A stretch of DNA of 64,000 nt from Klebsormidium nitens. Its lineage: Eukaryota; Plantae; Klebsormidiophyceae. The stretch spans positions 124,001 to 188,000 of the forward strand of contig DF236967.1 in the NCBI GenBank assembly GCA_000708835.1. The letters run 5' to 3'. The position numbers and the translations under genes are program-made. The notes under the pieces were generated by a model that was given only the letters and a program-made list of their open reading frames with translations, made no database searches and was not told the DNA's origin. Within the stretch, counting starts at the first letter, position 1, and every line of letters begins with the position of its first letter. Positions 1 through 23,108 of the stretch are shown here, one piece after another.

Positions 1-143
1 GTCGCTGGTCAAGGTAGGCATCACAATCAATCATGTTTACAAAACTGCAACAAAACCCTCCAATCAACTGACACCAAATCCAGCCGCAACCAGAGCACCA
101 AAACAATCTTTAGCCATGACAGAAGTCCCCGGTGCAGGCTTAC

Positions 144-3100
144 GTGTAGAGCATGGCGTTCTCCGCGTCTTCGAAGGGGTCGCTCTCGTCGCCCGGCTCG
201 AAGGCCTGCTCGAGCGCGCGGTAGCGCTCCTGCGGGTCGTCGATGGTAATCAGGTAGCGCAGGATGCGCACCTCCTTGGGCAGGTACATCTGCTGGCTCT
301 GCTGCGCCTTGAAGTACATGTGCGCCATGATGTCCTTCACCTGCGGGGAGGAGGCACACCACACTAGTTGGTCAGTACGGCCAGAAGCAACCGTCACTGT
401 CACCGTCAATGATTTGAAGTAATTTAGGACGTCATGTCTACTGGCATGCGCTATGATATTCTTCACCTGCAAGGCGAAACAACACCACACTAGTGGTTCA
501 CCGGGGGCCAGGAAGACACGACAGCCACTTGCTCTCAAGAGATTGGGTCGTCATGACCAAGAAGAGGGTAAGAGGGTGCGCGCGCGTTTTCAAGGAAGAC
601 GCGTTAGGACGGAGACAGTTCTTTGAATACAAACAAGTAGACCATCACGCCCTCAAAACGAGGAGGTAACCTAGGTTCAGAGAGATCCAGTGGCGCTCAG
701 CATGTTCTAAATTACGGCACTGCCTCTTCTGAGCAGTGTGATGAGGAGAGGTCGGTGTGAGAGGGGAACATGTCTGTGTTGACCCACTCCTGAAAGCGAA
801 ACCGCAATCTCTGGTAACAAACGGCGGAAAATAGTGTTGACGCCGGGCCTCGACCTAGCCACGTCCCCACATTGGCAGGAAACTGCCCGCAGGGGTTGAG
901 GTCGCCAAAGTGCTGGGTGCTATTTCCAAGCAAAGCTGCTCTCACAAGCCACGATAGCCCAGTGTCGCCACGACAAGACCTGCACTTTATTACATTGCGA
1001 CTCTAGCTCATGCGCTCACCATCTAAGAAAGGACGAAATCTTTGATATCCTGGCCTCCAGTTTGCTCCTGTCGGTGTTTGAAACCAAGTAAGACCACCTT
1101 CCGTCAAAAAGCGACCGCTGATTGACCTCCTACCCTCGCTACACCTCCCAGCTTCACACGACGAAAACGAGAGTCGTCAACACTAACCTCGTCCCTAACC
1201 AGGTTCGTGTCCTTGGCCGCGCAGTACGCCTTGGACATGGTTAGCAGGAGCGCGGGGTCTAACCCGCCGGTTTGCGCGAGCTGGTCGATTTTGCTGTCCA
1301 GCGTGGAAAGGTCGGGGGAGTCGAGCAGGCCCAGGAACTTTTCTTCCGCTTTGAGCATCAGCGCTTCGTCCTTCTGAATGTTGTCGTGTACCTGGATCGC
1401 TGTGACCAGCTTCGCCGACAGGTTCACGAGCTCTGCGCAGGTTAGCGGGAAAGTGGGTTAGAAGGGTTGGAAAACGCTAGCTTGACGAACTGGATAACAA
1501 AATCCGCCGAGGTTAGTCGAGAGTGGGTTAGCGGCAGTCGCAGCTTACGAAAGATAATGACGAGCTGTGCAAAGGGTAGCGGGAAAGTAAATCAAGAGGG
1601 GTTTAGTGACTACGCAGGGACACCTCGAAAGGATTAACTAGCAGACTTGCTGAAGTTCTTACTTTGCTGAGCGGCTCCGCAAATGACAGCGCAAAAAGGT
1701 TCTCAAGCTCACGAATGAGCGTCACCAACTTCGCCGACAACTTGGTGGGCTCTAGGATGTCAGGACTGGCGGCAATTGAGGAGGAAGACAGGGCGAAGAG
1801 AAGGTATGAAGGAATAAAGACACGTAAGGGTTTTTGCAAACATCGAATGGGACAGAACACCAGAAAGAGGTGGCAGAGTGACTGGATTTGAACGGGCTTA
1901 ACAAACCCAAGAAAGATGTACTTCCTAGTGTAGCATCAAATAACGAACGCTCCTTGAGAAAAGACACCACAGTTAAAGAGAATGAGCACCTCAAACGGCC
2001 CTTCAAATCAGCCGGACAGGTCTGTGCATCTGAACATGGTCGGCAGACAGAAGCGCAGCATTGTCCATGAGACTAACGTCACCAAGACATCGGAGGTAGC
2101 CAAGGAGAGACTCTCAAGACAAACCGAGACACGTCCATTTATCGTTAAAATCGTCAAAAACGACATCCGAGTATGACAGCAAGGAACGATCAAGCACAGG
2201 AGTGACCTGTTCCTGGGCTGAGAACAGCAACTGACAACGCAAGCATTACAGATTCTGTCAGCAGTTCCCTCATTCCGCATCATGGTTGGTCAGCACGGGT
2301 GACTCAGCTAGAGCTAATATTTTGTAATCATGGGGAACTGCGACGGTCCAAAATCAAAGGCATTCTGCGAAAATGCACGCTTTTCAAAGGAAACATGGTC
2401 GTAATCTGTTCATCCCTCACAGCACAGTCCACTTCTCCAGGGCAAACGAATGGGGACAAAAGCTCGAAAGAGGAAACAAAAGAAAACATGATTTCCGTAA
2501 ACAACCGGGTAAGAACAGACAACAGTCAATGCAAGCAATACAATTTTGCCAGCAGTTCCCTCATTCCGCATCATGGTTGGTCAGCACAGGTGACTCAGCT
2601 AGAGCTAATATTTTATAATCATGGGGAACTGCGACGGTCCAGAATCAACAGCATTTTCCAAAGTAGCACGCTCTTCAATGCGGACGTAATCGTCAACTCT
2701 TCATCCCTCACAGCACAGTCCACTTCTCCAGGGTTCTGAATAGGGACCAAAAGCTCAAAAGGAAAACTTGCTTCTCATTGGACAACCGGGTAAACTCAAG
2801 AAGGGCGCGGGCCAGGTCTTGACTCATCAAAGCGAATCTCGTGCACATACGCCAAGCCCACTGAAAACTCCTCGAAATCGCATTGCCGCACCTTACCCTG
2901 CTGCCCTCATTAGAGCAAGGCACGCCCTGCAGTACCAGTCTTGGGCTCCGACAATCACAGTCAAGTGGACAACAAACAGCCTAGAAGTGTAAACGCACCG
3001 TCCCGCCTGCCCAGCTCGTTGAACTGGCTGTCGGCCCGGATCCTGATGTGCTGGAAGAAGTCCTGCGTGAACTCCTCCCTCCGCCGCACGACCATGCTGT

Positions 3101-4839
3101 TCCAGTCTGTCTCGGCCTCCACCTCTGCCAACAGCTTATCGTGCGCAGCCATCTCGTCCTCCACCTAAAAGCACAACGGGAGTTCGTTTTGTTGTTTTTG
3201 CATGTTGCTGAAACTGCGCAGCTGACTTCATGCTTGAGCATGTTCAACATCCATGGAGGTATGAGCGTGTCCAGCTTGAGAGGCGAATCCAGCAGCAGTA
3301 AACAAGGCACCAGAAAGGTGGTAGTAGATGGTCGTGCAAGATCGTAAACCAGGAGAGCAGATCATGCACCAGTTGAAGGAAGAGACCTGCGAAGATCTCA
3401 CCAGGGTGTCCATGAATCAGGGCGAGAGAGAACCGCTCCCGAAACAGCCTAAAGTAGAAAGCCTCCACTGAAAGCCAAAGCTCCTTCACGCCCGTCACCC
3501 TCACCTTGTTGAGCCTCCTCTGCAGGCTGTACAGTTGCAGCGCGTACTCAGGGTTCCCGTCGTCCTCTGCTTCCTTGGCGCGCCGCTTGACGTGCGTGTA
3601 GAACTTGGGTCGGATGCTGGCCCACTCGCTGCTCAGCGCCAGCAGCCGCTTCCAGTCCGCCACCTCCGGCTTCTCCACCGTGAACACCGCAATCAGCTTG
3701 TCGCACACGTCGCGCAGCGTGCGCGACCCGTACATCGGCTCCCCTCCCTCGTCCCCGTCCAAAGGCTCGTCCGGAACTTCTTGTTCCGGTCTGACACTGT
3801 CCGAAGGCATCTGGTTGCTTCCTGATGGGCTTGACTGCTTAACCGAAGATGACTGGTTGCTTCCAGATGATTCCGGCGGCTCGTCCGAGAGCGTTTGGGC
3901 GTGCTGATCTTGCCCGCTGGGCCCCGCATGGGCGCCATTTGCGATGCGCTCCGCATTTTGCTGCTGTGTTGCTTCGTCTTGGGGCTGCTGGTGGTTGGAA
4001 GAAGAGGGGGTGGTGTGATTCTCAGGGGAGGTGGCAGATCCGGGGGTTGGCGGGGCAGACTGTGGAAGGGAGTTGACCTGAGGCGCTGATTCGCTGTGCT
4101 CAGCACTTTGCTGTGGAACTGCAGCAGCCAAAAAGCGTTGTCACGAAATTGATTTGTCCTTCTAAGCACTGGCGGTGTTATTGCCTGGCCGGCAACTTCT
4201 GACAGCGGAAAAGCCTAGCAAAGAGTCCGGGCGCCAGATCCCAAGGACTTACAGAAAAGCTCCAGTTCCCTCAGACTCCATTCTGAGGCGGAGTCTTCAC
4301 TGAAAAGGGAGAATATAACTCTAAGTGGAGTTGCCAAACTCTCCAAGAAAGAATCGAGCTCAATCTTGGCTTTTCTTGTAACGGAATGCTATCCAGCCGC
4401 TCAACCACCCATCCATCGCTGCATTGAAGGAAAGCGAGTCGCAGAACACTTTCTTTAGATGCCGCCTCCTCCAACATCACCACCCGCAACAGTGGAGTGC
4501 CTTCAAAACAGGAACCATTACCGCGCACTTAAGTAGGACAATCAAGAACTTGACAACATCAGCATCCCAAGAGACCACCACTGCCTCACCATTCAAAACG
4601 CCCAAATGCTCGCTCTCCGCACCAGCCCGCAAGCTTGCAGCACGTCCTTTCCTGAATGGTTGCAGGTCCGGCAATAAAGGCAGCGCCAGCCCGCCTTGCC
4701 ACTCTCTGCCGCTGTATAAAAGAGGCATTGGCACTGGAGGAAGTCTGAACCCTGCTGCATGACCAATCCGCTGCCGCTGCAACAGACCGCATGAGAAGGC
4801 CCCAACCTGGGCGCCACTGCACACCACCGCTGTCACCAT
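144..4839 (-). CDS. CDB1 / At4g37920-At1g36320 family chloroplast protein, 3' end runs off the window
   Basis: Phase-consistent exons 4623-4839 (transit-peptide-like), 3505-4118, 2999-3164, 1188-1432, 144-340, all GT-AG. Motifs CDKLIAVFTVEKP..DWKRLLALSSEWASIRPKFY, RRREEFTQDFF, LDPALLLTMSKAY, PKEVRILRYLITIDDPQE match my recollection of this plant family. Exon 144-340 ends at a GTAAG donor. Confidence 0.85.
1663..1751 (-). other. Candidate duplicated alternative/vestigial exon inside the CDB1-like intron
   Basis: CCTAG acceptor and GTAAG donor bound 89 nt reading (E)PTKLSAKLVTLIRELENLFALSFAEPLSK. It resembles the start of exon 1188-1432 (ELVNLSAKLVTAI) and has the same phases (1 in, 0 out). 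Confidence 0.45.
2222..2795. repeat. Two-copy ~291-bp direct tandem repeat in an intron
   Basis: cagcagttccctcattccgcatcatggttggtcagcac.. starts at 2259 and again at 2550; similarity continues to caaccgggtaa in both copies. Confidence 0.9.
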
Positions 4840-6202: not shown

Positions 6203-8606
6203 TTAGTTTGTTGCTTTGACGGCTGGCTGGTCGCTGCTCCCGACTGCAAGCCCCGAGCCTGCCGCTGCACTCCGAAACAAACCACGTGAATTCCCGAACG
6301 GCCGCTTGAACGCCCTTCGCCGGTGCCCTTCTTCCTTTGAACGTCCTGTTGGCCCAAAGCAGAACCACCGGTGAGGCACGGAAACTTTGGTCGATGCACC
6401 GCCCCCGTTGCTCGCCGCCGGAAAGGGGCTCCCGTCCGAAGACCCCCCCGCACCGTCCGCATCCGCAGTCCCTGCGCTCGAGCTCGCCACCGGATTGGTC
6501 AGCGAAGTTGTCGTGGTCGAAGGCTGCAGCGGGGCCGAACTCACGCTTTGGCTCGGGGCCCCGCTCTGGTTAGTACTCGGATAAGCACTTGGGTTAGCAT
6601 TGGAACTCGCACTCTTGTTAGAGGTCAGCTGGTTAGCGGTTGGGTTTGCGGTGCCGGCACGCTGCGGGTTGAGCGAGGGGGACCCCGGAGACAACACCGT
6701 GAACTCGATCAGATACGCGGGGTACGCTTGGTGATCCTGGAACACGACGAAGATGTCTGGGTTGAATTCACTATCCACCACGGAGTCAAACCGGGCATAC
6801 CCCGGCGCTCTTTCGGTCTTCACCACGGGGGGGGATCCCCCTCGGGGCGTCGACGTCCACGTGCCCACCAGGACCTGCGCCAGGAACATGCGCTGCACCC
6901 CGTCCTCGTCCGGATCGCAGTACTGGACGGAAACGGACGGAGTCCGCGCGAAGTAGCAGCCCGGGCCGAACGCGCAGCGGCGCGAGAAGGAGCGGTCGAA
7001 GCCGACGGCGGCGATGCGCTCGGCGGCGTCGGCGGAGGTGCCGTGGAAGAGCCAGCGCTCGCCGCCGACCTTGGCGCGCGTGAGCGCGTAGTAGTCGTAC
7101 TCGTCCGGGTTCTGGACGCGCAGGATGCGGCGGACGGCCGCCGGAAAGCCGGACGGGATGACGTCACCTGCAGGGAGCGGATGGAGAGGGAATCTTAATA
7201 GACTTCTAGGGTCGTGACTGGAAGCTCGACATCTTAACATTAGAGCGAGCATGGATCTGGAATGGCTGATTATAAAAGCGGGACAGAGTGAGTAAGGAGC
7301 CCAGAGATCGAAGTAGTCCTTGCCGTGTGTTTCCCACATGCGAAACATCAGTGGGCAAGACACTGAACATTTGACTCTACCACGGGCCTTTTGCATCTTC
7401 GGAAGCAATCGGCCGCACACAAAAACTCAGAGCACGTGGTCTGTTACTAAAGACAGAGCTCAATTGCAGTAATCCGCTCCCAGACGCGTACGTCATCCTT
7501 CGTTCGACAAGCATGAAAAACGAGACAGAACGCAAACGCGCACATAGCCAGCAGACTGAAGTACCGGTTTCAGTTGTTCGAAAGGCGGAATTATTCGTCA
7601 AAGCAGCACCTACCTTGACCAATGAATTGGCTGAAGACCAGGTTGTACTCCTCGCTACCTTCAGGCAGCGGCTTCGTGACTACCCGTTGAGTCCCGTTCA
7701 ATCCAAGCTCCCAGAATTTTGGGTACCTGAATTGAGTTCGAATCTGGTTTAGGAAATTTGTTCTGAACCAGCAAAATGACTTCTCAAGAAGCTCTCATAT
7801 TCGAACCTTCCTACTTTCGCAGCTTGCAATACAGCTGCCGGTCTTTAACAATTCCTGCCAGAGGAAGGTAGGGCGAGATCTAAGGTTCTGGCCAAGACAA
7901 GGTATGAGGCTGACAATTTCAACCCGGAGACATTGAAAGACATTGCACACGGAACGAGAACAGGTAGACCCGACGATCATGTTCGGCTGGGTTTTTTTAG
8001 GCGTTGAGGACGGCGCAGAAATAAGCTTTCAACACCAACTTTTGGTTTGCAATTGCTGTACAGAATTTTGCTCCGATTGAGGATTCAAAGGAACTTCGAA
8101 GCATGTGAAGCAAGGAATGCCATCTTCTCCTCAGTTTCTTACCCCTTTTGCTGCATCTGTTCGAAGCTCCGCTGCTCCTCTGCCGTCTCCGCCTCAGCCG
8201 CCTTTCCGCTCAGGAACGCCAGCTCGTATTCCGCCCGGCTGAGCGCCCGGCACTTCTCCGCTGAGCTGTGAGCCAGCGGACAGACTGCTCTCACCCGAAC
8301 GTCCTTCCTGCACGCGGCCTTCACGCAGAGAAACGTCCGGTACCGTACCGGATGGTACTCCTGCTCCGTCACAGTGTGGGCGTATTTACACTGTTCTCCT
8401 TGGGGGCAGCCTTCGAACTGCGCCGGGCATGCGACGGGCAGGTAAAAGTGTGAATACGGGTCGCGCCTCTGCTGAGCTGCGGTGTGGTAATCTGGACAAG
8501 CGCGGCCGCGGGGGCATTTCCCCTTGCGCTGCATGAAGGGGCAGGGCCGCGTGTAAAGTGCAGTGTAGTTGCTGTTGTGCTTCTGAGCCTTGTGACTCGC
8601 AGCCAT
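6203..8606 (-). CDS. Unkempt/TZF-type tandem CCCH zinc-finger + PARP12-like (H-Y-I) ADP-ribosyltransferase, ~513 aa
   Basis: Exons 8143-8606 (phase 2 GTAAG donor), 7614-7726 (YPKFWELG..LPEGSEEYNLVFSQF) and 6203-7167 join in frame (1542 nt). ART motifs: LFHGT, FGPGCYFA..S..Y, MFLAQVLVG, DSVVD..NPDIFVVF..QAYPAYLIEF. Three CCCH fingers with RRDP and EQEYHPVRYRT linkers. The C-terminal low-complexity tail end is less certain. Confidence 0.85.
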
Positions 8607-10594
8607 GCCCTCTCGTTTGGAGCTTGACTACGAGAGAGCGGAGGGTTTCACAGGAGATCCTAAATTTCTGACTTGAGCTACTTATGACCAACTATTCGAC
8701 TCTGTTGCATCCTCCATGAGGTCATGGGGCAGCTTAGCTTCGACCTGACAAATGGGACAAATGCACTTCCTTCTGCAATGACCATTGGTTCGAGGAAGAT
8801 TTACAATCTGTCAAAGATGTTGCACGTTTTCATGGTCTTTAATTAGCAGGGAAAAGGCAGCTCATTCCGCCGCGAGTCCTATGCAAAGCGGCATGCAGTT
8901 TGCGCCCCCAAACCGAATCAAGCTAAGACAATTTATCTAGAAACAACCACTACAGTTAGGCAGCCTGGCGAGATTGTGAGGATCATCGACGGCAGAAAGA
9001 AAGACGAGCATTCAATATGTACCTGGCTGAGGGTGGAACGTCAGAGAGCTCTCAAGAGATGCTGATTGCATGAGGTGATGCTGCGAAGTCTTCTGCTGGG
9101 CTTCGACGCTGCATGGGCGCTGCATGGCGTGTAGTGACCTCACCATGATCGATCCGCGTACATACTAGCCTTGGCACCATCGAAGAGCCGTGACAATCGG
9201 GTGCCATCGAAGTCGGCGCACTTGATCAAGACTCTGAGACGAACGGAAAGGTGAAAAGCGCTGCGCCTAGCATTTGCGATGGCGGGCGGTCGCGGGGTCG
9301 CCGGCGCGGCCGCCCGGGTCATCCGCTGCGCGCCTCGCGGACTACAATAGGTTAGCTTACCTGAACACGAGGTTAGAAAAGTTAGCTTCAACAGCTTGCC
9401 GCTGCTTGCAGCTCACAACTTTTCTGGCAGCAATTCCAGCATTGCGTTCTGGAGAGCTGGAGAGGAGACCAAACCTTTGATCTGGTACGCCCACATGCTA
9501 GCTTGTGGCCCTCATGAAGGTGTCAGATAGACGAGCTATTGATGGCCTTCTTGTTTGGGACTCTGCTTTCACCACGCTGAAAGCTGTACAAGGAACGTAT
9601 ATTGACTTAGAAGAAAGTAGCGGGCGTCAATCACTTTCACCCACAAAGCCGTGACCTTCGTCGCTTGCAAGGAGGGTTGCATTTGCAGCGCCCGCAAAGA
9701 CAGCGCGAGTCATTTAGCAGTGGTGCTGGCCTGCAGCTTTTGTATGTAGCTTCTCCCCTGCGTATTGCTTTCTCTCAAGTGGAGCTAGAGGAGCTGATTG
9801 CAGCAAAAGGCCAAGAGCAAAGCAGAAAGAAGCACACCAGGGGTACATACTGGCCGCAGATCAAAGCCCCAGTCAAGTCCCGATGCCTCTCCTACGATCA
9901 ACCACTAGTTTGGGGACAGACAATCAAGTGTGTTGGCTGGTTTGCAAAACTAGCAGGTGCACTTCATGTAAGTCCCAAGGGCCACATTGTGCTCTTGGGA
10001 AAGTGAAACACCAAAACGAAGGACAACGTGAACGAGACCACATCTTATTTGGTGGCGACAGAGTACGATGATTAGCTTTTCAATTGAGCTCCCTTTCATT
10101 CATTTATTGCAGCCTAGACCAGAACAAATCTGCGTCCTTGAGGACTTGAAGAGGAGTTGACCCTGCGCAGCCTTCTGAACTTTCAACATAAGATCTTCCA
10201 ATCACAAGAAACTAGCTCAAGTTGCAGCCACATGCCCAATAGACCTTTTCAAATCAACAAGGTGTAGATGCTGACCAGCTCAATGAAAGAGCTGGCTTGG
10301 AATTTCGACTAACAATAGTTGCCAGGAAATTCACCTTGTTCCTCTTTAGAAGCTTGCACACCCTAGCTAGTCATTCCTGATCAAGACCTTACACCAATGA
10401 TCACAGGTAAACTGATTCTGGGAGAATGCAAAGAAACATACTCTGTGTCCAAGGTGCGTCCTCAAGGGTGTCCTGCTTCTCAAACAACCACTTCTGCAAG
10501 GCCCCTTGGCAAGCTTCGACTATCAAGAGCAGACTTTCTTCGGATTATCTAGTGAGCTTTATTGTGAATACTTGTACACTTTTGTTTTATACAG

Positions 10595-12923
10595 AAGTCT
10601 TCAGAGATGGTGAAAAGGCCTACAGAGGGATCCCCCTCTGGGCCTCCAGTTGGGGGCTCCAGTCTGACAGTCAGTTGGAAGGCCCCTGAGTCAGAGCTTT
10701 GGCACGACTACGAGGATGACGTTGGCAGGAAAATCCTGGCAGCGGCCGCCTCTGGACAATCCGAGGTTGAGATTTGCCATGAAGAGATCAGTCCTGATAA
10801 GAAGCAGAGGAAGTCGTCAAGGCTGCGGCAGCTGCGGAAGATTCATAAGGGACAAAATGGTTGCAGGTAAGACATTGTTTATCTGATTTGGTGGAGACTA
10901 TGGGCGAGTTCTTTCAAACATCAGGGCTGAGTCAAATGGGAGGGATGATTCCTACAAGCCTCAGAACCTCTTCTGAGGCTTGTAGACTGTTGCAACTTGT
11001 CATCCCTGTATCATTGTTGTCCCGGCGGCAAAGCATTGTCTCTGGCCTTTCAAAGCATTCCAAAGGGCGGCAGAAACAGAATCGGTTCGTCCGGGAGCTT
11101 CCGAAATCACTGCCAGTCGTAACTTACTCCATGATGCTTCGTTTTCTGCTTTCAGCGAGGAGAACGGTACTGTGCACTTCGACAGTATGCAAGTGCGGGT
11201 TGCTGCTTCGAACACAAACCGGCTCATTCGCTGGCGTGTGTCGTCCACAAGCTGCTGCTTCTACCAACTGCCAACCAACGGGGCCGCTCTCGCAGCGCTG
11301 GTTGCGAAACAGAGGGAGTCGGAGAGAAGGCACGTGAGTTTGTGTGACACAGGTGGCTGATATTATCGGAAGAAGTCCAAACTGTGTGAGCCTTCACTTG
11401 GAAGGTCTCGTGATCCGTGCTTTACTTATGATTTTGTGTTCGTTTGATGACCTGCTCGAAGTGCTTTGGTCGACCTTCGCTTTCGTGATTACACAGTCGA
11501 GTGATGCTGGAAACAGATTCGAAAGAAAATGTGATGTGAGCTGCTATGCTTACGTGTTTCGATTGAGACTTACTCTCTGGTAACGTGTGTACGGATGCTA
11601 TGTCAATGGGTCGTTCCAACGGCACATAATTTGAAGGTACAAACGTTGTTATTACCAGACAAGTAAACCTCAGTCAAGTCCCCTCTGAGAACGATATGTG
11701 ACTCTTCTCGGGCGAAAGACAAGATATTCTCCGGCTGACTTCTGCAGTTTGAATCCTTCTCTCGACCTCCTGACACAAGCTTTTAATACCGTATCTCTCC
11801 TTTGATACGTCCTTGAAACTCTGAGCATCGAAAAAGAGTTAGGCAAACACAACCGAAGCAAAAAAGCCACCACTCCGTGTTACAGGTCTTGTCGGAGCTC
11901 CTCCAGTACCTGACGTCAGCCTCGCGGATCAGCGCCTTCCTCTCCACCGCCATGGTCCAGCGAGTGACCGCGCACGGTTTGCCCATGAACAGCGCGCGCG
12001 ACCTGCGGGTGGTGCGGACCGTTCCGAACGTGCACGCCACGCCGCACCGGACGCTCTATGAGCGCTTCCTAGATGCGATGGTGCAGAACGTGGGAAGCCT
12101 TGGAGGTGAGCGGCCGAAGTAACCCGCTCTCAGGCTACCCTGTGTTGGTACCCTGTGTACATTCTGGGGAGGCAGATAGTTCGAGACGCGAGGGGATTTT
12201 GCGTTCTGATTGCGCTTCCGTTTGGCTAGCGCGTCCAGTAGGACGGAGCACTTGTTTCCAGAGAGTTTGGAGTATGTGGTGAAAGAGCCAGAGGGTCGAG
12301 CCGTTGGAAACTGACATGGATTCGTTATCTTGATGGTCGTCTTCAGAGCACCACTTGAGGAGATGCGCGAGATTCTCGAGTAAGCATCTGTAAGATCTCC
12401 ACTCGATTGCGGACTTTCTAAGTTGCACAGAGGAGTCTATATGACATTCGAAAGGGTTCTGATAGGCCTCCATGCGAATACTACGGTTAGGAAAGATATC
12501 AGATGACTTCGCAAGGTACCTATCTGGGATTTCGGCGGCCAGAAAAGGAGATCTGCTCAACACAACTCTTTGTTGTCCGCAGATGCGCTCCAAGCGCTTC
12601 TGGGTTCGGAAGCCCAGTCGATCGCGCCCTTCAATTTTGCCTTCCACGGGACCGCCCGACGCAACCTTCCGTCCATTCTGGCGCACGGGATGTCGACGGA
12701 GAAGCGGCTTAGCCAGCGCAGCGGCGACTGGTTTGCGGCATCTCCGTACGTTGGTCTAGATTACTGTCGTTCTCGAGGTGGACCGCTGACGCGTTACCAG
12801 CTCCTACTATTTTTGCTGCTCCCCGTGCCGTCTGCGGTGCAGACACGGCTGTTGGACATTCTCGTGATCTCGGACAGGCACTTCGAGCTTCCTTTAGCCA
12901 TTGTCGAAGTTGAGTACAAGTGA
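10595..12923 (+). CDS. WWE-like domain + divergent PARP-type ART domain protein (5' end unresolved)
   Basis: Exons 10595-10866, 11156-11333, 11886-12105, 12583-12923 join with matching phases (2, 0, 1). WWE-like: VSWKAPESELWHDYEDDVGRKI..EVEI and GTVHFDSMQVRVAASNTNRLIRW. ART-like: FAFHGT..NLPSILAHG, GDWFAASPYVGLDYC, DILVI..ELPLAIV. Possible further exons near 9270-10550. Confidence 0.7.
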
Positions 12924-15241
12924 CATTCGATGGGCCCGCATGTGTAGCGGCCGTGAGGACAGGGACCGGAGCTGTCATCAAGCGGAGCAATTGCCTGATA
13001 ATAATAAAATCCGACAAACATAGGACTGTTGAGCTTTTCATGGCGGCCGCCGGAAGGATGAGAGAAAGGAACCCCGGGACTTTACATGATCGTGCATCCG
13101 ACAGAATTGCCTGCCTGGGGCGCCCGGCCTGCTGGCAGCTGAACAGTCAGCCGATGATATACAAACAATCAGTGGTACTGCTGAAATTTAACGGCTAATC
13201 ATTCTCTAGAAATAAGCGATACCAATCCAACTACAATGACGGTATGCAAAAGTTTGCACTCCTGTCAATCCGTCAGGTTGAGATACGTTTTGATTGTATA
13301 AGTCACTATAGCTAGTTTGCTGACGTGCGAGACAAACGAGGAGTTTACTGTACGATCGACTGTGTTGGAGGCGGGACCGGCTGATGCGCGTCCGCTTTGA
13401 TATGGCCTCGTTACTGAGAGTTAGATTAGGCCCGCGAAGCTCTGTCGACCGCGCAACGCCATGTGCACCCATGCGACATGTGATGTCTGCAGATGTTCCT
13501 TTGGATTGATGCCTGATGTGCATGCAGTAGGAGTGCATCAATTGAGATCTTGCGCTTAGAAGCTAGCGCATTCAAGCACTGAAACATAACATGGCGGCAC
13601 ATGCATGTGCACCCGCGCCTTCACATCAGTCGTTGAATTAAGGCCTTTTTGTGCCGGCCTGTAATCATGAAGTATCTGACAAGCCGGGTGTGTGTTTCAT
13701 TGACTCTCATGTGCATGTTCGTTTGGACAACAGGCACTAATGCTACTTGTTATTCAACAGCAGTAAGGCTTTGATTACAAATGTTTGAGCAGATGGCCTC
13801 AGTGCACATCTGGCTTTCAATGCGTCGGACCCTGGCAGTGTAGATACTACGGACGGCGCGGCCGGCTGGGCATGCACTTTACGGCCGGCTGGGCACGCAC
13901 TTTACATGCAAGACGGCTGCTACAATTTTGGCAACGTTGTCATGAAGCTTCCTTTACGAAACCGATGGAGGAGGTGCCGAAATCAAGCTGCTCGGCTGGA
14001 AGGAAACAAGCCAGTGGCCACAAAGCTTCCTCCCGTTCTTCAAGAACATGCAGATTGTCATTGACTCTGTGGATCGCCCATGGATTCTATTGTGTGTAAG
14101 ACGAAGTCTTGCAGGCTTACGTGGACGATCATTTCGAAGCTGTTTCTGGATGAACTTTCTACGTGTAGACTCACAGTCGACGCTTGAACGCCATGTAAAG
14201 ACCATCGAGGGCCACCTACTCAAGCACATCTGAAAATGATATCTGGGAGAACCATGCCACGGCTCCAAGTACGAGGGGAGCACCCACGAGCGGAAACAGC
14301 GTTACGAAAAACAGGACTTCGCCCAGCGTGACTATACTGGCCGTCATTGGCACGACGGTAAGCAGGTAGCGACGTCGAGAGAAATACCACTCTCCGACAT
14401 GGAAGGACGTCCCACTGGCCTGTGAGGGTTGGTGAGATTTTGTCAACATGTTGACAAAAGTCGTTGTGAATCAAACCGCCTGCTTTGGCAGCCTGGCAAG
14501 CTCACCCAAGAGCACCGTTTGCATCGGCTGTTATTGAGATTGATGGATGGGAAGTCACAAGCAGATTGTTTGCAGTTTTCCAAGCGAGTTGGACAGCAGA
14601 GGCCCTCCTTATACGAGATACGGGATTACAGAGTGCTATACCTGGACAAGCGTAGCCCATTTGATGCCGAACACGGAAACGCTTCTGTGTTTCTCGTAAG
14701 ATCCCGGTACGCCAAGGATGTCTGTCAAGGAAAGCAGAGGTGTCGATCGATCCTGAACTTTTTTTCTCCTCCTCCTTTCTTCTGTACGAAGTAGTGGGAC
14801 AAAGAGCTGCGTTTATTTCATCTTTGTACCTCACTTGCTAGCGCCGGTTTATGGACTGATCCTTGGCTTATATCCAGACGTACTTCGTTGAAGGACAGTC
14901 TCTTTGAATCACTCGTGCTGTCTTGAACTGGTATGGATCCATACCCCTGTCACAAATTGATGGCGAGAAGCTGAGTAGCTCGTCGCCTTCAACAATGGCA
15001 TACTACTGCCTCGGCGAGGTGAAGCGCTTGACACTAGACCCTTCCAGCGCTCAATTCAACTGCTTCACAACTTTCAAAAGTTGCATGGCTTTGTTCACAT
15101 CCATGTTGCCACCTTCTTGAGCCATTCAGTCCCGTCTAAGGTGAACAAGAGCAACTCTTAGATGCTCCTCTTAAGTGCACAACTCACCCGAGTAGAAAGC
15201 CGGTGCAGGAGTCTCCTGTTAGTTAAGGCGTTGACGAGTTT

Positions 15242-15724
15242 TCAGACGTCTGCAACCAGCATTGAAGAGTTTTGTTCACAAAGATGCAGGTCTGGTGGAT
15301 TGATTTGGACGGAAAGTGGATAATTGTTCTGCTCCTTACCTGCAAGATCTTCGTTCTGTATCCAGCTTCCTGGTTTATCTTCCCACACCAAAGCTCGATC
15401 CCCGAAGGAAATCTGTTCGCTCCAGGGCAGAGGAACGTCCCAGCTTGCACCAGAGCTGAGAATTAAGATAAGGCCGAGAAGGGAGGAAAGAAGGAGAATA
15501 ATGGTTGGCCACATCCACATCTTCAATCTCCAGAATTCAGGCGCCGGTTCAGTCAGTGGGCTGGGAGGTCCATCTTTGAGCTCTGCTTCATGCGCAGAGT
15601 CTTCCTCAACGTCCTCCAAGTCCCAGTCGGAGGAGGCTTCGTAGCAGCCACTTTCAAGCTGATCTGATGTTTTAGACAGCGCGCCAGCCATCTTACCTTC
15701 CTTTCCACTCCCTGAGCGAACCAC
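15242..15724 (-). CDS. Possible type II single-pass membrane protein exon/fragment
   Basis: Acidic N-terminal region, then hydrophobic WPTIILLLSSLLGLILILSSGA; GTAAG donor near 15338. Downstream frames contain stops. Confidence 0.4.
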   Translation of the reverse strand: MVRSGSGKEGKMAGALSKTSDQLESGCYEASSDWDLEDVEEDSAHEAELKDGPPSPLTEPAPEFWRLKMWMWPTIILLLSSLLGLILILSSGASWDVPLPWSEQISFGDRALVWEDKPGSWIQNEDLAGKEQNNYPLSVQINPPDLHLCEQNSSMLVADV

Positions 15725-17209
15725 TGTTTGCGATGAATGAAGGAAGGCATTGGTGCACCTTGCCGTGAGTTCACCGACCGGATTCCGTTTCCGTCGATCC
15801 GCTCAGACCGATGGGGCGGCCGCGGACTACGTCGCCTCTGGCTTTCGGTCCTGCTATTTTGATGGAGAATCTGATGGATTTTTGCAGCTTTGAAAGCCAT
15901 TGCTGAGCACTTTGTCATAGCTTCAGGAGCTTCGCTTCGCAATCGAGTCAATCGCAGGTAAGATCATGCGCATACGCCCGCTTCTTTTTGACGCTTCAGC
16001 TTTCCAAGCCGGATCATCCTTTCATCATGATGATCAGATCATCGTGAAGGTGTTCGAACGCACCTTGATGCTTGCATCGCTTCCAAGATTCTAGGTATAG
16101 GATCGTGAATTTCCGCTTTGATTTGGAAAGAGAAAGAAGAAGCAACGGACAGCACGTCCACACAGATTGCTCCCACTCGAGGGTGACGGCAAGTGGCTCT
16201 TAGTGGAATTACCTTTCAGAAGACATCGAGTAGACTTTTGATCGTCACTGTCGATATGATCATGCTCTTTGAGAAGAATTGCAGCTCCAAGGTACTAAAA
16301 TCTCTTTGAATCGTGCAGAACTACGTCAATTGGGGCTTTTAACTTTAAAGGTGAGATGCCGTTCAGCCGTCTTGATTAATCTACGCTCCTCAGTCGCTTT
16401 GAAAGATCGACAGTTACTACAATGGCTTTCAGAATCCGATTAAAATGTTCAGATAAGAGCTGCATTAGATACGTTAGTTCTTGATCCAACTGAAGCAGGC
16501 ACGACATCCTTTAAAGTGCAGTCTGCTTGAGGTCTCACAATCGTCTCCTGTGGCTTCGACTGCAGTAACATAAAGTCTCTTCGAATGAAATGATAATTCG
16601 TATTCCCTTCGTCCCTTCAAGTCTTCTTATTTCAACTCAAAGAACAATCAACTTCTTATAATCTAGGTTCGAATAACACCGCGAATAGACTCGAATTAGT
16701 TTCTTGTAGGCTTATTCTGAGCGAGTAGTGGCAGACGTGACGGAACGTTCAGGTCAAGGAGGGTAACGCTGAATGCTTTAAGAGCTCCTTCCGCACACAT
16801 AGAACCCGTATTTTTTCTGCCTTTCGTTGTTGTTCACCGTGCAAAATGCTGGAAAGCTGGCAGTACTTGCACTGTGAACGATCAAACGTGAAGCTCGGCA
16901 TTGAAGTGCCACCTTTGTACCTTACAGGTGAGCAAAGAACTTTCACGAATTCATTCTATCGATACGTTCTGCGGCTCCGAGCACCAACGGAGGGAATGGC
17001 TTCCTCCAATGTAAGCATCATCAGGATTACTTTCTTGCAACCTGTTCGTACGTGGTCCCTTTCAAGCCACCGCCATGTCACTCGAGTCAATTAGAGAGTG
17101 CTGTGCTTTGACCTTGGAAATGACAGAGGATGCTTGATTGAGTGGCATGATTGAGTTTTAGGGTCCAAGTAGAACCCTTTCGCAAGAGGATTCGGATCCC
17201 CTCTTTCAG

Positions 17210-17567
17210 GACTACCGATCTTTCGTTATTTTACGATGAGGAATCTGCAACTAAAGTCACATATGAAGGTGTTTTAAGCAGCCCTCAGTATTGCCTTTGC
17301 AAAGATCGTTTTGAAAACCTGGATGTCGTGTCCTGTTCAGTTCCAATATCTAACGGCTGCCCTTTTCTTGAGTTACAGAGCACCATTGGAATCAAAGCTG
17401 GTGAAGGCAAACCCGGGGGAGGCGGCATTTCCAAAAGCCTGCTGATTATTATAGGCTGCTGTATTGGGGCCGGCATATGCGTCGCAGGATACGTAGGGCT
17501 GGTCATTTCATGCACTAAACGCTTTAGAAAGAGGAAGCTCGACAAGACTGTCCACCCTACACTATAG
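17210..17567 (+). CDS. Possible terminal exon of a type I membrane protein
   Basis: ctctttcag acceptor; Cys-containing segment, hydrophobic LLIIIGCCIGAGICVAGYVGLVISC, basic stop-transfer-like KRFRKRK, then stop. Upstream exons not resolved. Confidence 0.45.
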
Positions 17568-20029
17568 AAGAAACTTTTAGAATCGATTACATAACGACAC
17601 TTTGCATCGACCGATTTGACGCTGGATAAATGATTTGTAAAGCTGTCTCGATTTTTTTCTGCCATTGTAGGTCTCTGCTTTGATCCACGTACGTTAAAGT
17701 GACTATCTGTGATGCCGTTTTCCAAGCGCATCATAGCCGTTATGATTAAGGGAAGCCCTGGCTGAGCAACGCTGTTTTGTAGCACGGTCTCTGAAAACAG
17801 ATACCTTACGTTATCGTTCCACTTGACCGTAATACCACAAGACGAAGCAACGGTTTATTGACCCCTTGAGACCCTACGTGGTTTTCACGAACAGGCTAAG
17901 ACACATGCGGCAACTCAGGATGTAATAGCGGCCATAAATGCAGCGAAGTATACCTTTTACTCTTGCGGTCTTGGTTGACTCGAAGCAGCTCCATGCAGCG
18001 CTGCCATGAGAGTAGCACGCGTCACCGTGCACGAAAAAATGTGACTTCTGCCTACTTGTCGCCATCCAATCTCTTCTATATCGTTATTGATTCCCCTACG
18101 AAAAAGAAACAGTCCAAGTTATGTTACAGTTCGAGGTGACCACCTCCATGCAGATGTGTTTATACACAGTAATGATAGTAATAATGTTGCACACGCAGAT
18201 TGAAGGTTTCACTCAAGAAGTGTTCGGGTATTTCATGTCACCATTGTCGTCTTTCGCTCCGAATCGAAACCAGTTAGAGAGCTATGTTATAATATGTTTC
18301 TTAAGTCAAGATTATTGAAAACCTTCGCCCGTTGGCTTACCTCAATCGTTTGGGCCCGTTTTCCACCATACGATTTTTATCTTTTACCATCCGTATATGC
18401 ATTCACTTAGGCGCATCCGCTCGACTTACGAGTCTGATCCACTTCCTGCACTCCAATCCATCACTTCCTCGGAAAGCGTTGGACAGTCTCAACTTCGATG
18501 AGCGCACCTCACCGCTTGGCCATGAGCTTGCACCTGCGCTTATGCTTTGGAAGTCGTTCTGTATTTATCGAAGAAAGACGGAACCGGACATGGTAAGCTT
18601 GTACAGCGGACACAGAGCGGACATCAGATTTACACTTTGCTTGGACGCTTGGTTCTTTGCCGCCGCTGCACCCCACTGAATTTTACGAGTCCAATGCATG
18701 CACGCGAGCGTGCACTCACGGGCGGACCAGCAGAATGTGACGAGCCATGCCAATGATATCAGTCAGATATGAATCGAAGATAGTTTTTCGTTTCAAACAC
18801 AGTCCGTTTATCTGAATGCCGTCTTTAACTGAAATTTGGCTCACTACCCTGTGCAGCAGGAACGCGTATCCAGTAGAGGTTGCTTCGAAACCTGGACAGA
18901 AGAAAGGAACTGGGAAGAGGATAGAGACTCTGACTCCAAGGGTCTGAGACGTGAAACAAATCCAGCCAGAACTTACCGTGCATGGGCAACTGCGCGTACC
19001 GCGTGAATGAACAGCGCTTTCGCTCGCGCGCAAGCGCACAGCTCCCCCCTTAGTGTGGGACCCTGCGCCTGGCATGATTTTAGTACTTCGAATGAAAAAT
19101 ATCGTGCCAAATCCTGTGCCACCTTTCTTGAGATGCTCGAGGTTTCTATCCGCGAAGGATATATTGATGCTTGACAGACATTTCGGAAGGCAGGACTGTG
19201 CAGATCATTGATCCGATCATGAACCCTGAGCATAAATGTGTTAGCTAGCGCTCTTAATGAGAAGTCTCTCCTACACTGTCAGAAAAGTACTTTGCCCCAA
19301 ACTTAGGTTTCAGGAGTATGATGATATGGCTTCCTCAACCCTCAATCCCGTCTGAAATGCCCTCTTCTTTACAAGGCGCTGCTTCTAACATAACATAGGC
19401 GCGCCGGAGGCGCGCTGGGCCCGTTTTGTTGACAACGACCTTGATCTCAGGACAATTCCCGGACAAATTTGCAAAGCTTGGCTTGAATTACGTCTCGGGA
19501 AACTGCTCAATATGACTTTATCACCATCTTCAAACCGTTTAGAAATACAGAAAGACAGAAAGAAAGAAAGACAGAAAGGTACGTCACGCGGTACACCCAA
19601 AGAACTTTCTGAGCCGGGGACAGATTCAGCGCGTCAGATACATGATGATTTAAGGGGGTGATCAGGGGAACTGATCTTTCCTGATCATTTTACACCGTCC
19701 CTCCAAAACTCGAACTGGCGGTGAACAGACACAATGAAATGGAAGAAATCGACGGTCAGCAGGCGCAACCGTCGACTTTTCAGGAGAATCCGCCAGCTTT
19801 GGTAATATCAGCTTCGGATCTGTCCGATGGAGGTGGTATTCAGTGCCAGCTCTAAGATTCATACTTGCGATACCTTACCTGCAGTAAACCTCGGCGGCAA
19901 CATTTGCCGAAAAAGTTTGCCGCCTCCGCAAACCGATTTGACACACGAAACCTCCCCAAACCGGGTTAACATCTGTGTCAAAGACCTGAACTTGGTGCGT
20001 ACCGCTGGCGACTGAGGTTTACGGTTGGT

Positions 20030-21360
20030 TTGAGTCAACTTAACCAGCCGCGCGTCAAACCGAGCGCGGATGTGCCCTTTTCGAAGTCGGCTCATCTCGA
20101 AGCCGAGAAAGCATCTGTTTGTATGATTGCAGTGGCGCTGCTTGAAACGCGCTTCCAAGCCATCATGGATCAGATACCGCATGCCAGGCAAAGCTTGCCA
20201 TTCGGTAAACGGTTTTATCTGAACACCGTTCTCAAAGGTCCCGCTCTATGGTTCTATGTGGCCCACAGTATCGTCTGCGGCCTTGGTATCCTCGTCTTCA
20301 CCATCTTGGCGCTGACAAGTCCAAGTGCCCTGCATTTTTCTGGTAAGCTGCGTTGCGCAAACTGCTGGGACATGCTAGCAATCTGATTTTGCAGAATAGA
20401 TATCCGGAAGTTTGCAGTCTCTTGCTATCAAGAAGATTCGTCAACCTTTCAAACGCCAAGGCAGAAGTACTCAACAGCCTGTACTTCGGTATCTCGGCTC
20501 TGCGAAGGTTTAGTTTGTTCAAAAGTCCTGTCATTCATTCAAGAGGCAGCGGCTCTTCTCTGCCGTAAAGACAGGTTTTGGTTCCACGGACACTTTGCGT
20601 ACTTCTTTCTCTCTTTCCAAATAAGACTTGAACAAAAGTTGAACAAAGAGACGTGTTTCTCTTGGGACGCTAATTGGCATCGCGCTTAGTAAACACCATT
20701 CTGTATTTGGCGCTTTTGCAGAAATCCAGGCCCCTTCCACGAATGCCATAATTATAGTCCATGACCTGCGCATTCATGGTCGCTGCTTCTCAACGCGCAA
20801 CTACCTGCCAGTGGTACGAAATCTGCTCAAAAGAGCCTTCCTGCAGAAGTTTTCTTTAAAGAGGCTCATGTCAACCCGGTTCCTTGCATGCAGAGCACCT
20901 TTGTTGAAGCTCGCGGCCTTACACGATGCAGCTTACAATGTCTCTTGCGATAGTCCAACATTGATTGCCAATTAAGGTGTCTGGACGGAGCCTTCGCTCG
21001 AGGACTGGGGTCTGATTTCTGACTCGTCGTTTTGTCAGGTCAACTCCAGCTCCGGCCAGAATGACGCATCTAGACACCTGACTAAGCAGTTCTACCTCCA
21101 GGGCGTCATGGTCTTTGTTTACTATTCTCTCTTGGGTCTGATGATCAAGATAATTGTGGCCGATGTTATACCAACTTTTTGGAACGGGACGGAATACGTG
21201 GTACAATGGTTTACAAAAGGCCTGCATCATCCTATCAGCAAAGAGTCTAGGTTTTGAGTCCGAAGGTACTTCCACATCCATCCATAAGCAAAGGTCTTGA
21301 AATTCGGTAGGATACGGGGCGGGTTGAAAGACAAGAAGAGGGATTTGATTAGAAATCATT
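20030..21360 (+). pseudogene. Possible decayed multi-pass membrane protein gene
   Basis: Hydrophobic segments LWFYVAHSIVCGLGILVFTILAL and FYLQGVMVFVYYSLLGLMIKIIVA lie in + frames; the 20895-21360 frame has 3 internal stops. Confidence 0.25.
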
Positions 21361-23108
21361 GGTTAGTGACAACGTGGTCAGGCGGATTCGTTTGAGGCAG
21401 GGTTCCGGCGCAAAGACGTGGCCTTTCTCGAGTTGTGAATTCTATCGATACATGGTTCAGAAGTGATAGAATCCACGATACAGCGTGAGGATTGGGCTGT
21501 ACTACGGACAAAGGCAGTCTCAACGTTGACGTGGTCCCCTCGATCTGGAAGTAAGGCGGTCGTGGGCATTGTTGTCGGGGGACTATACATGCCAGCAGGC
21601 GGTTTTGAATTTATTACATCGAGCCGGGCCTCTGTGCGACCTTCTGGCTCTTACATGAAGCCTCTGTACGACCTTATGGCTCTGACTTTATGATCATGAG
21701 GTGACCGAGGCGACTCCGCTGCACTCTCAGGCTAATTTCGATCTGAGTCTAAGAGTCAGCGACGTCTTCTGCTTCACTTCGGTACTCTACCAAAGCATGT
21801 TTGAGTCAGAGCTTTTGCATACAAGTTCCTCTCTACTCTCACACTGTCGGTCCAGGCGCGCTCTCATAAACCAGAGTCTTCTGAATAGAGGCTTCTGCCC
21901 GTCCTTTTACCGTTGGAAGTGGCCAGAAGCCACCTCAAGCCTTACACCGTAATCGGCATGAGTGCGGACAGTGAGTCATCTGGGCATTGCAAAGATGCAG
22001 GCCGTCTGATCTGCAGCTGCTTCTTGGAGTCGAATCCGCGCTTTCCCCTTTTCTTCTTGTACAGGCAGCACATTCGTCGGACCATCTCGGTTATCGTATT
22101 TCGGTCACTAGTGCTGCTTTCCGAGAGAATGGAGCTGTTGCGCCCACGTGGCTGCAGCTTGATCTCCAGCTCACGCATGTAAAAGGTGGCTTGCTGCTCC
22201 AATTCAAGTTCGGCTCTGGACTTTGCGTCCATACTTTAGCGGCGCGGGCCCCATAATCTATATATTTGCGTCCGACCCCAATTGCACCCGCACCACAATA
22301 TCGTTAACCTTCGGGCGCGTGCTTACGTATTAAGGGTGATCCAGAATGAGCCCGCAAATGGATGCCAGTGGCTCACATGAGCTTAGAACGCCAACACCAA
22401 TTAACAAGAATCATGCATCATGTATACGTACATCTTTCAAGCATGTCCGATTCTTTCTTAATGCCGCCATGACGAAAACGTATTCACCCGTCCTGCATGC
22501 GTGGTCTCGTCATCGAGTACATGGTCACGAAATCTGACATACTTAGCCCATGGTGCGCGGTTGGCAGGCGTACTGGTGGGCTGCGATCTCCAGCGCCGCA
22601 ACACTTTTACTGCCTGTTGATGCGCGGCTCAGCCGACCGTCAATGTCTACATATGCAGCCTTTTATCAAAGTTCACGATAGCTTGACCCAACGAATTTAT
22701 CTCAAAATCGTGTCGGATATTGTGCACTGAAGCCACTCAAATTGGCAGGTATGCAGATTGACAAATTGTCGGATCCGGTTCACGATGCCAGTTTCGCGTG
22801 TCTGATTGCGTTTTGTTTCATTCCTCCAGCATTTATAGATTTGATGCGAGCCAAGACGCGAAGCCTCCTTTGGATTATACCAAATATATTGTAAACCTGA
22901 TTAACCATGCACCACGAACCACGTTGTTTACGAGGAGTTCTGGGTCTGACTAAAGTTAGGACCACACAAAATTCTCAAGGGGCTCAAAGCCTATTTACTC
23001 CAGTCAGACACACGAGAGTCCGCTTGTGTGCGGTGGCATGATGACGTCAACATCTGATCGTTTCCGCCACATTCTGACCTGACGGACTGTGGCTTGCAGA
23101 CCCCAAGT

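Follow-up and report, generated by a model that had tools for sequence, protein, structure and literature searches.

Two head-to-head PARP-superfamily genes of the alga Klebsormidium nitens, one with CCCH fingers and one with a WWE fold, are probably neighbours through conserved local gene order

Whether two genes for ADP-ribosyltransferase (ART) domains that stand head to head in a streptophyte alga work together, or are merely neighbours, is the question raised by a locus of Klebsormidium nitens (contig DF236967.1, assembly GCA_000708835.1). The locus lies within a 64,000-nt window, the whole stretch of DNA that was analysed and in whose positions all coordinates here are given, and its limits are the final bases of two stop codons, 6203 for gene 1 (KFL_000180250, minus strand) and 12923 for gene 2 (KFL_000180260, plus strand). 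The original prediction, made from the letters of the DNA, was of two non-identical, divergently transcribed ART genes separated by at most about 2 kb, with CCCH fingers and an ART on one strand and a WWE-like domain and an ART on the other. All of this is borne out, the distance from ATG to ATG being 2,001 bp, and searches by sequence and structure support a PARP domain and CCCH fingers for gene 1 and a PARP fold and a WWE fold for gene 2. In architecture both genes vary in a new way on PARP kinds already known. A functional coupling of the two, which had also been proposed, is unproven; they are probably best seen as two distinct PARP-superfamily genes, whose adjacency reflects a local gene order conserved within the Klebsormidium lineage and not a dedicated writer-reader module.

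Gene 1 encodes a cluster of three CCCH fingers followed by a PARP catalytic domain. Its coding sequence is joined from three exons, and the joined translation is identical to the public KFL_000180250 protein (P0001, 513 residues):

8143..8606, minus strand: gene 1 exon 1, with the start codon, the Unkempt-type triple CCCH cluster and a helical linker
7614..7726, minus strand: gene 1 exon 2, the N-terminal part of the PARP catalytic domain; the exon limits reproduce P0001
6203..7167, minus strand: gene 1 exon 3, the PARP catalytic core (ending near 6698), followed by some 160 residues of low-complexity tail and the stop codon

The three CCCH units span residues 22-41, 60-77 and 94-113 (the cluster as a whole, 22-113, corresponds to window 8268-8543) and have the spacings C-x8-C-x5-C-x3-H, C-x6-C-x5-C-x3-H and C-x4-C-x9-C-x3-H. 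This block matches zinc fingers 4 to 6 of Unkempt (ZnF4-6, structure 5elk, crystallised with RNA) at E 6.3e-9 by phmmer, residues 19-94 aligning with residues 16-97 of the 5elk chain with every ligand in register and the inter-finger linkers included. Plant arginine-rich tandem zinc-finger (RR-TZF) proteins presumably have fingers that resemble these too. Pfam gave no match in gene 1 to the PARP12/ZAP-type finger family (PF25261) and none to a WWE domain at E<=10, and only some 40 helical residues separate finger 3 from the ART. In a word-based protein search gene 1 drew just four relatives, all matching the ART region and none the fingers, a weak test given its length and word limits.

Comparison was made with a Logan genomic contig from a close Klebsormidium-like relative (L002), with JGI metagenome contigs from a more distant one (L007 and L009, the latter from 3300060285) and with a Logan contig (L003, from SRR14092358) that carries a PARP exon of the gene 1 type. 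That exon is nearly identical in L003 and L009, and both samples apparently contain a single Klebsormidium-like alga or two very close ones. The zinc-ligand Cys and His residues of the gene 1 fingers are all retained in L002 and L009, and all exons of both genes are under purifying selection, with ratios of non-synonymous to synonymous substitution (dN/dS) of 0.10-0.33. For gene 1 the ratio is 0.24 in exon 1 (against L002), and in exon 3 it is 0.18 against L002 and 0.31 against L003; exon 2 is 82% identical in L002 and 56% in L003. After residue 355 comes the low-complexity tail, which is poorly conserved and is interrupted by an in-frame stop in L002.

The ART of gene 1 is recognised by the Pfam PARP profile (PF00644) at E 6.5e-22, scoring 78.5 bits against a cut-off of 26.7 and covering profile positions 1-198 of 199. 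Its triad of H234 (7043-7045), Y264 and I331 aligns with the triads of PARP10 and PARP15, and is retained as H-Y-I or H-Y-V in L002, L003 and L009; mono-transferases, PARP10 among them, show the pattern H-Y-I (PMC2964712). In PARPs at large the third triad residue is E in polymerases and I, L, V or Y in mono-transferases. Nearest among solved structures are PARP10, PARP15, PARP14, PARP12 and ZAP (E about 9e-22 to 1e-14), followed by weaker chain matches to RCD1 (2e-5), PARP4 (about 1e-4) and tankyrase (about 7e-4), and neither PARP1 nor PARP16 reached E 0.001 in this search of solved chains. By these PDB E-values, which are not a tree, the domain is nearer to PARP7 and PARP9-15 (Clade 3 in the broad sense) than to other clades. 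An ESM Atlas model of the protein aligns over residues of about 125-355 with PARP12-, TIPARP- and PARP10-like clusters at a template-modelling (TM) score of about 0.5.

The likeness to ZAP and PARP12 that had been claimed for this gene therefore holds in part, in that a CCCH module is joined to an H-Y-I ART of Clade 3 type, and fails in part, since the fingers are of Unkempt type and a WWE is missing. On sequence grounds gene 1 would be a convergent look-alike of animal PARP12, PARP7 and ZAP and not their orthologue. It is a candidate RNA-guided mono-ADP-ribosyltransferase, in which the three-finger cluster of Unkempt or plant TZF type would bind RNA and so bring the ART to RNA or to RNA-bound proteins; addition of single ADP-ribose units would be expected by analogy with PARP10, PARP12, PARP14 and PARP15, from the H-Y-I triad.

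For gene 2 the exon structure comes from RNA. Spliced contigs from four runs of four studies, placed on 7000-12950 and from unknown growth conditions, begin at 9389-9430 and share in all four runs the joints 9967>10595, 10863>11153, 11333>11886 and 12103>12581, all of the introns being GT..AG. The last exon runs from 12581 to beyond 12950 with the 3' untranslated region (UTR). The first in-frame ATG, at 10607, opens a reading frame of 332 residues that ends at 12923 and agrees in every residue with positions 95-426 of the public KFL_000180260 protein (P0071):

9389..9967, plus strand: gene 2 exon 1, most likely 5' UTR; no in-frame ATG occurs before 10607
10595..10863, plus strand: gene 2 exon 2, with ATG 10607, the first half of the WWE fold and a basic insert
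11153..11333, plus strand: gene 2 exon 3, which completes the WWE fold (at about 11261) and opens a helical linker
11886..12103, plus strand: gene 2 exon 4, with the helical linker and the N-terminal part of the PARP-like fold; dN/dS 0.22
12581..12923, plus strand: gene 2 exon 5, coding part, the ART core with H241 (12645-12647), W269, Y280 and I312, and the stop codon; dN/dS 0.14

The public model of 426 residues, with an ATG near 9279 and 94 extra N-terminal residues, was rejected. Its first intron is contradicted by RNA contigs that run contiguously from 9389 or 9430 to 9967, and the extra residues are not conserved in L002; for these two reasons 9389-9967 is read as 5' UTR, and the public start is probably mis-annotated, the true start being 10607. 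Minor alternative GT..AG joints of gene 2, 10062>10595 and 11348>11882, occur in the single run X1 at depths of 14 and 2, and low-depth contigs over introns 1, 3 and 4 point to unspliced precursors or intron retention.

At the level of the profile libraries gene 2 is hard to see. The whole reading frame stays below threshold in Pfam (PARP E 0.07, WWE E 0.17), the exons scanned singly gave nothing above threshold, and a single-sequence search of the PDB matched only a short Tpt1-like motif. Structure is more telling: an AlphaFold 2 (AF2) model built on a 39-row alignment reaches a predicted local distance difference test score (pLDDT) of 77 overall and more than 90 over most of the ART, and residues 157-332 have the PARP catalytic fold, with PARP10 matched by Foldseek at E 8e-8 and tankyrase and PARP10 matched by VIA at Z 13.6 and 13.3. 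Residues 16-121 match nothing but WWE domains (beta-beta-alpha-beta-beta-beta fold) in the VIA comparison, covering 61-70 residues of domains 69-85 residues long, with Z of 6.4 for TRIP12 (66 of 73 residues), 6.1 for RNF146, 5.8 for Deltex, and 5.5 for both HUWE1 and DTX1; the AF2 strands and helix of the first WWE half fall at residues 20-56. The family profile of gene 2 in turn matches the Deltex WWE at E 0.0045, and a Closterium homologue has the same type of ART together with a WWE that Pfam recognises at E 6.4e-10, with which the first WWE half of gene 2 aligns at E 2.3e-4 (hhalign). Because of the profile match, the exclusively WWE structural matches and the Pfam WWE of Closterium, the label WWE-like given to gene 2 is justified, with the qualification that the fold carries an insert of about 35 residues. 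No RST domain was found in gene 2 by Pfam; the protein ends 2 residues past the last ART strand, and the Closterium protein likewise is without RST.

The pocket of gene 2 has H241, then W269 at the position of the triad Tyr, and I312. The Trp is present in all close family members that cover the position (two partial rows are without it), and distant members have Tyr there. Residues 238-264 (window 12636-12716), FAFHGTARRNLPSILAHGMSTEKR, differ little from the NAD-lobe motif of an archaeal RNA 2'-phosphotransferase Tpt1, YHGTPRRNLPSILKEGLKPMKR, and the motif FHGT-RRNLPSIL-G---KR matches Tpt1 at E 5e-5 to 6e-8. The final Arg of motifs of this type is, we take it, part of the Tpt1 catalytic set. 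A Tpt1-type enzyme was nonetheless ruled out by the fold, with Z 5.2 to Tpt1 against 13 to PARP. Domains of the WWE type bind ADP-ribose in some animal proteins and in Arabidopsis RCD1. Gene 2 would most likely act as an ADP-ribose reader or scaffold, possibly with a weak transferase activity.

Gene 2 is a member of a stand-alone WWE-ART family of streptophyte algae that is common to K. nitens and Closterium. An exhaustive HMMER search of 1.84 billion representatives with its last exon gave 62 relatives at E<=0.001, of which the closest are K. nitens paralogues (KFL_004040150, KFL_001310210, KFL_001610050, KFL_001880230, KFL_009860010, KFL_001410230 and KFL_000060320), and which include a protein of Closterium sp. 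NIES-68 (P0019); the family occupies at least 8 loci in K. nitens. The model of KFL_001610050 (P0006; L006 10001-26576) is 16.5 kb long and 1,042 residues in translation, with three successive WWE-ART modules of which one ART is truncated, and is probably three tandem genes fused by annotation. In more distant relatives, the eukaryotic metagenome proteins P0037, P0013 and P0026, the divergent ART type of gene 2 is joined to Deltex C-terminal, UBA and WRKY19-type zinc-finger domains, which links this ART type to ubiquitin-related partners.

Do the two genes then form a pair in any sense beyond position? Their ARTs are 36% identical over 44 residues only, which rules out a recent inverted duplication; because they are only so remotely alike, the pair is not one ancestral protein cut in two either. 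The claim that the animal architecture has here been split over two genes accordingly fails, the fingers being of Unkempt type, each gene having an ART of its own and the family of gene 2 being independent. The pair is present in L002, where the proteins are 73-93% identical to those of K. nitens, and in L007/L009, where gene 1 is 58-70% and gene 2 38-55% identical and gene 2 is tandemly duplicated. The L007/L009 contig however keeps its collinearity with the window between about 140 and 30,800, more than 30 kb that take in a DUF8246 gene to one side of the pair and several further genes to the other, and because the pair lies inside this block its adjacency there is no more than background synteny. 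Both genes diverge more between K. nitens and L007/L009 than do most of their neighbours, many of which are 70-88% identical. No CCCH-PARP neighbour was found within 10 kb at three loci where K. nitens has gene 2 paralogues (L004, L005 and L006) or at the Closterium locus, so the synteny proposed as a check on the pairing exists within the Klebsormidium-like genomes and is absent at these four other loci of the gene 2 family.

The surroundings of the pair can be described briefly. Downstream of gene 1 the neighbour is the DUF8246 gene (window 1-4728, minus strand, 507 residues in the public annotation), which is conserved as a neighbour in L002 and L009. Downstream of gene 2 about 10 kb of K. 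nitens DNA (window about 13000-23000, set against L007 10350-12100) is without counterpart in the collinear metagenome contig, and in its place L007 has the second tandem copy of the gene 2 type, at 7565-10318. An Rfam scan of the whole window returned nothing. From the ATG of gene 1 to the 5' end of gene 2 RNA there are about 780 bp:

8607..9388, no strand assigned: intergenic stretch from the gene 1 ATG to the gene 2 RNA 5' end, a putative shared promoter region

A repeat scan of this intergenic region gave nothing of note, and 8612-9500 has no blastn match in L002, though the flanks on both sides align.

Expression does not tie the genes together either. Gene 2 RNA was assembled at depths of 23-81 in the four runs, and no RNA contig from them touches 7000-9388, which takes in the part of gene 1 within the range on which contigs were placed; 6203-6999 is likewise taken as uncovered, because the word shares of the runs (0.36-0.47) are fully explained by the region of gene 2. 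Co-regulation of the two genes as originally predicted thus finds no support in these four RNA data sets, though contigs from unspecified growth conditions leave room for induced co-expression.

Against this background the reading of two separate neighbours has to be set beside others. A co-regulated antiviral or stress module, in which gene 1 senses RNA and writes ADP-ribose while the WWE of gene 2 reads the mark and amplifies or relays it, all from a shared bidirectional promoter, seems to us unlikely. It would fit the head-to-head order with at most about 780 bp in between, the retention of the pairing in the close and in the more distant relative, and the fast divergence of both genes together with the expansion and tandem duplication of the gene 2 family, traits that defence genes often show; silence of gene 1 is also compatible with an inducible gene. 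But expression is uncoupled in four studies, the pairing in the distant relative sits inside a long collinear block, three paralogue loci and the Closterium homologue do without a CCCH-PARP neighbour, the core of the intergenic DNA is unconserved even in a close relative, and no further defence-type genes stand beside the pair. Slightly less probable again is a more specific, lineage-bound version, where a gene 1 that is silent until induced by virus, foreign RNA or stress would mono-ADP-ribosylate RNA ends or RNA-bound proteins chosen by its Unkempt-type fingers, the WWE of a constitutively present gene 2 protein would read the product and its H-W-I ART would relay or extend the signal. If that were true, the pair would be an independently evolved two-gene counterpart, in the plant lineage, of the animal PARP12/ZAP antiviral arm.

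Two further readings concern the genes one at a time. The gene 2 family could be an algal forerunner or sister of SRO/RCD1 from before the gain of RST, a purely non-catalytic ADP-ribose reader or scaffold whose position by gene 1 is incidental, though we find this doubtful. The plan of WWE plus PARP-like domain is present in two streptophyte algal classes; the two 2010 surveys (Citarelli et al., PMC2964712; Jaspers et al., PMC2848248) pointed out that streptophyte algae were unsampled and left its presence there undecided; and RCD1, a WWE-containing protein, is a reader of poly(ADP-ribose) (PMC10115779). A language-model feature search adds a Streptophyta WWE_5/WWE/PARP cluster at 0.88. Set against this are the lack of RST in a protein that stops with the last ART strand, the retained triad His, the lower VIA Z to RCD1 (11.6) and wheat SRO1 (11.0) than to PARP10 and tankyrase (13.3-13.6), and the absence of RCD1 and SRO1 from the family-profile and structure-atlas matches listed. 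Very improbable, lastly, is that gene 1 is a dying or never-expressed model and gene 2 alone is functional. The missing RNA contigs over 7000-9388, with word shares accounted for by gene 2, and the poorly conserved tail interrupted in L002 would suit such a fate, yet the three-exon reading frame is intact, all zinc ligands and the H-Y-I/V triad are retained in three genomes and dN/dS is 0.18-0.31.

Several points also weigh against our preferred reading of two separate neighbours, a candidate writer and a probable reader. The pair is retained in all three Klebsormidium-like genomes examined, among them the one whose gene 2 product is only about 50% identical and tandemly duplicated, and a functional module would show the same. 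The absence of gene 1 from RNA contigs is not proof of silence, as contigs drop rare transcripts. The AF2 model of gene 1 residues 1-355, on a 9-row alignment, is unusable (pLDDT 31). For Trp at the triad Tyr position we know of no characterised precedent, and this bears on whether gene 2 is a reader or an enzyme.

Taken as two genes in their own right, which is where their value lies, the coupling between them being unsupported so far, they show that a streptophyte alga carries PARP kinds beyond the surveyed land-plant set. One is a predicted Clade-3-like mono-ART fused to a finger cluster of RNA-binding type, and with fingers of other origin than those in animals it is a case of convergent domain fusion. 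The second kind is an expanded and fast-diverging WWE-ART family, shared with Closterium, that retains the triad His and has Trp at the pocket Tyr position. Both are concrete proteins with which to ask if the plant lineage has RNA-linked mono-ADP-ribosylation, and both bear on the origin of the WWE-PARP plan of RCD1. A literature search for Klebsormidium with PARP, WWE or SRO terms found no paper on PARP-like genes of Klebsormidium.

How the genes relate to known systems depends on which part is compared. With PARP12, PARP7 (TIPARP) and PARP13 (ZAP) of Clade 3E gene 1 has in common the CCCH RNA-binding fingers, a C-terminal PARP domain with H-Y-I and an ART nearest Clade 3. It differs in having no WWE and Unkempt-type fingers, in an ART slightly nearer to PARP10, PARP15 and PARP14 than to PARP12 by PDB E-values, and in belonging to the plant lineage; Citarelli et al. 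(PMC2964712) described the CCCH/WWE/PARP group, Clade 3E, as animal-only and Clade 3 as without plant members. Perina et al. (PMC4245714) later reported that every supergroup has Clade 3 and that green algae have PARP16-like proteins. With Unkempt gene 1 shares three CCCH units in matching order and at matching spacing, as well as the RRDP and HP..YRT linkers between them, but where the known Unkempt and plant RR-TZF proteins carry RING or ankyrin parts it carries an ART instead.

Gene 2 has the two-domain plan (WWE and ART) and the size of PARP11, and PARP11-like clusters come top in the language-model feature search (0.92), although its triad is H-W-I and not H-Y-I, its sequence likeness to Clade 3 ARTs is marginal (the Pfam E of 0.07), and it has the WWE insert of about 35 residues and a helical linker of about 40 residues before the ART. 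Among PARPs the wider gene 2 family profile matches PARP16 (Clade 6) best, at E 1.5e-7, but gene 2 is without a transmembrane tail. Many distant members of the family have the Tyr of a …DYVVV… motif at the column of I312, which we take to be the third triad position in PARP16. With Tpt1/KptA the likeness is confined to the NAD-binding motif, the fold being PARP-like and not Tpt1-like. Surveys of PARPs list only PARP1/2/3-type proteins and SRO/RCD1 in land plants (PMC2964712, PMC2848248), and from the latter, Clade 2, gene 2 differs in being without RST, in retaining the triad His and in having no special closeness of sequence or structure; what it shares with them is a place in the streptophyte lineage and a WWE set ahead of a diverged PARP-like domain.

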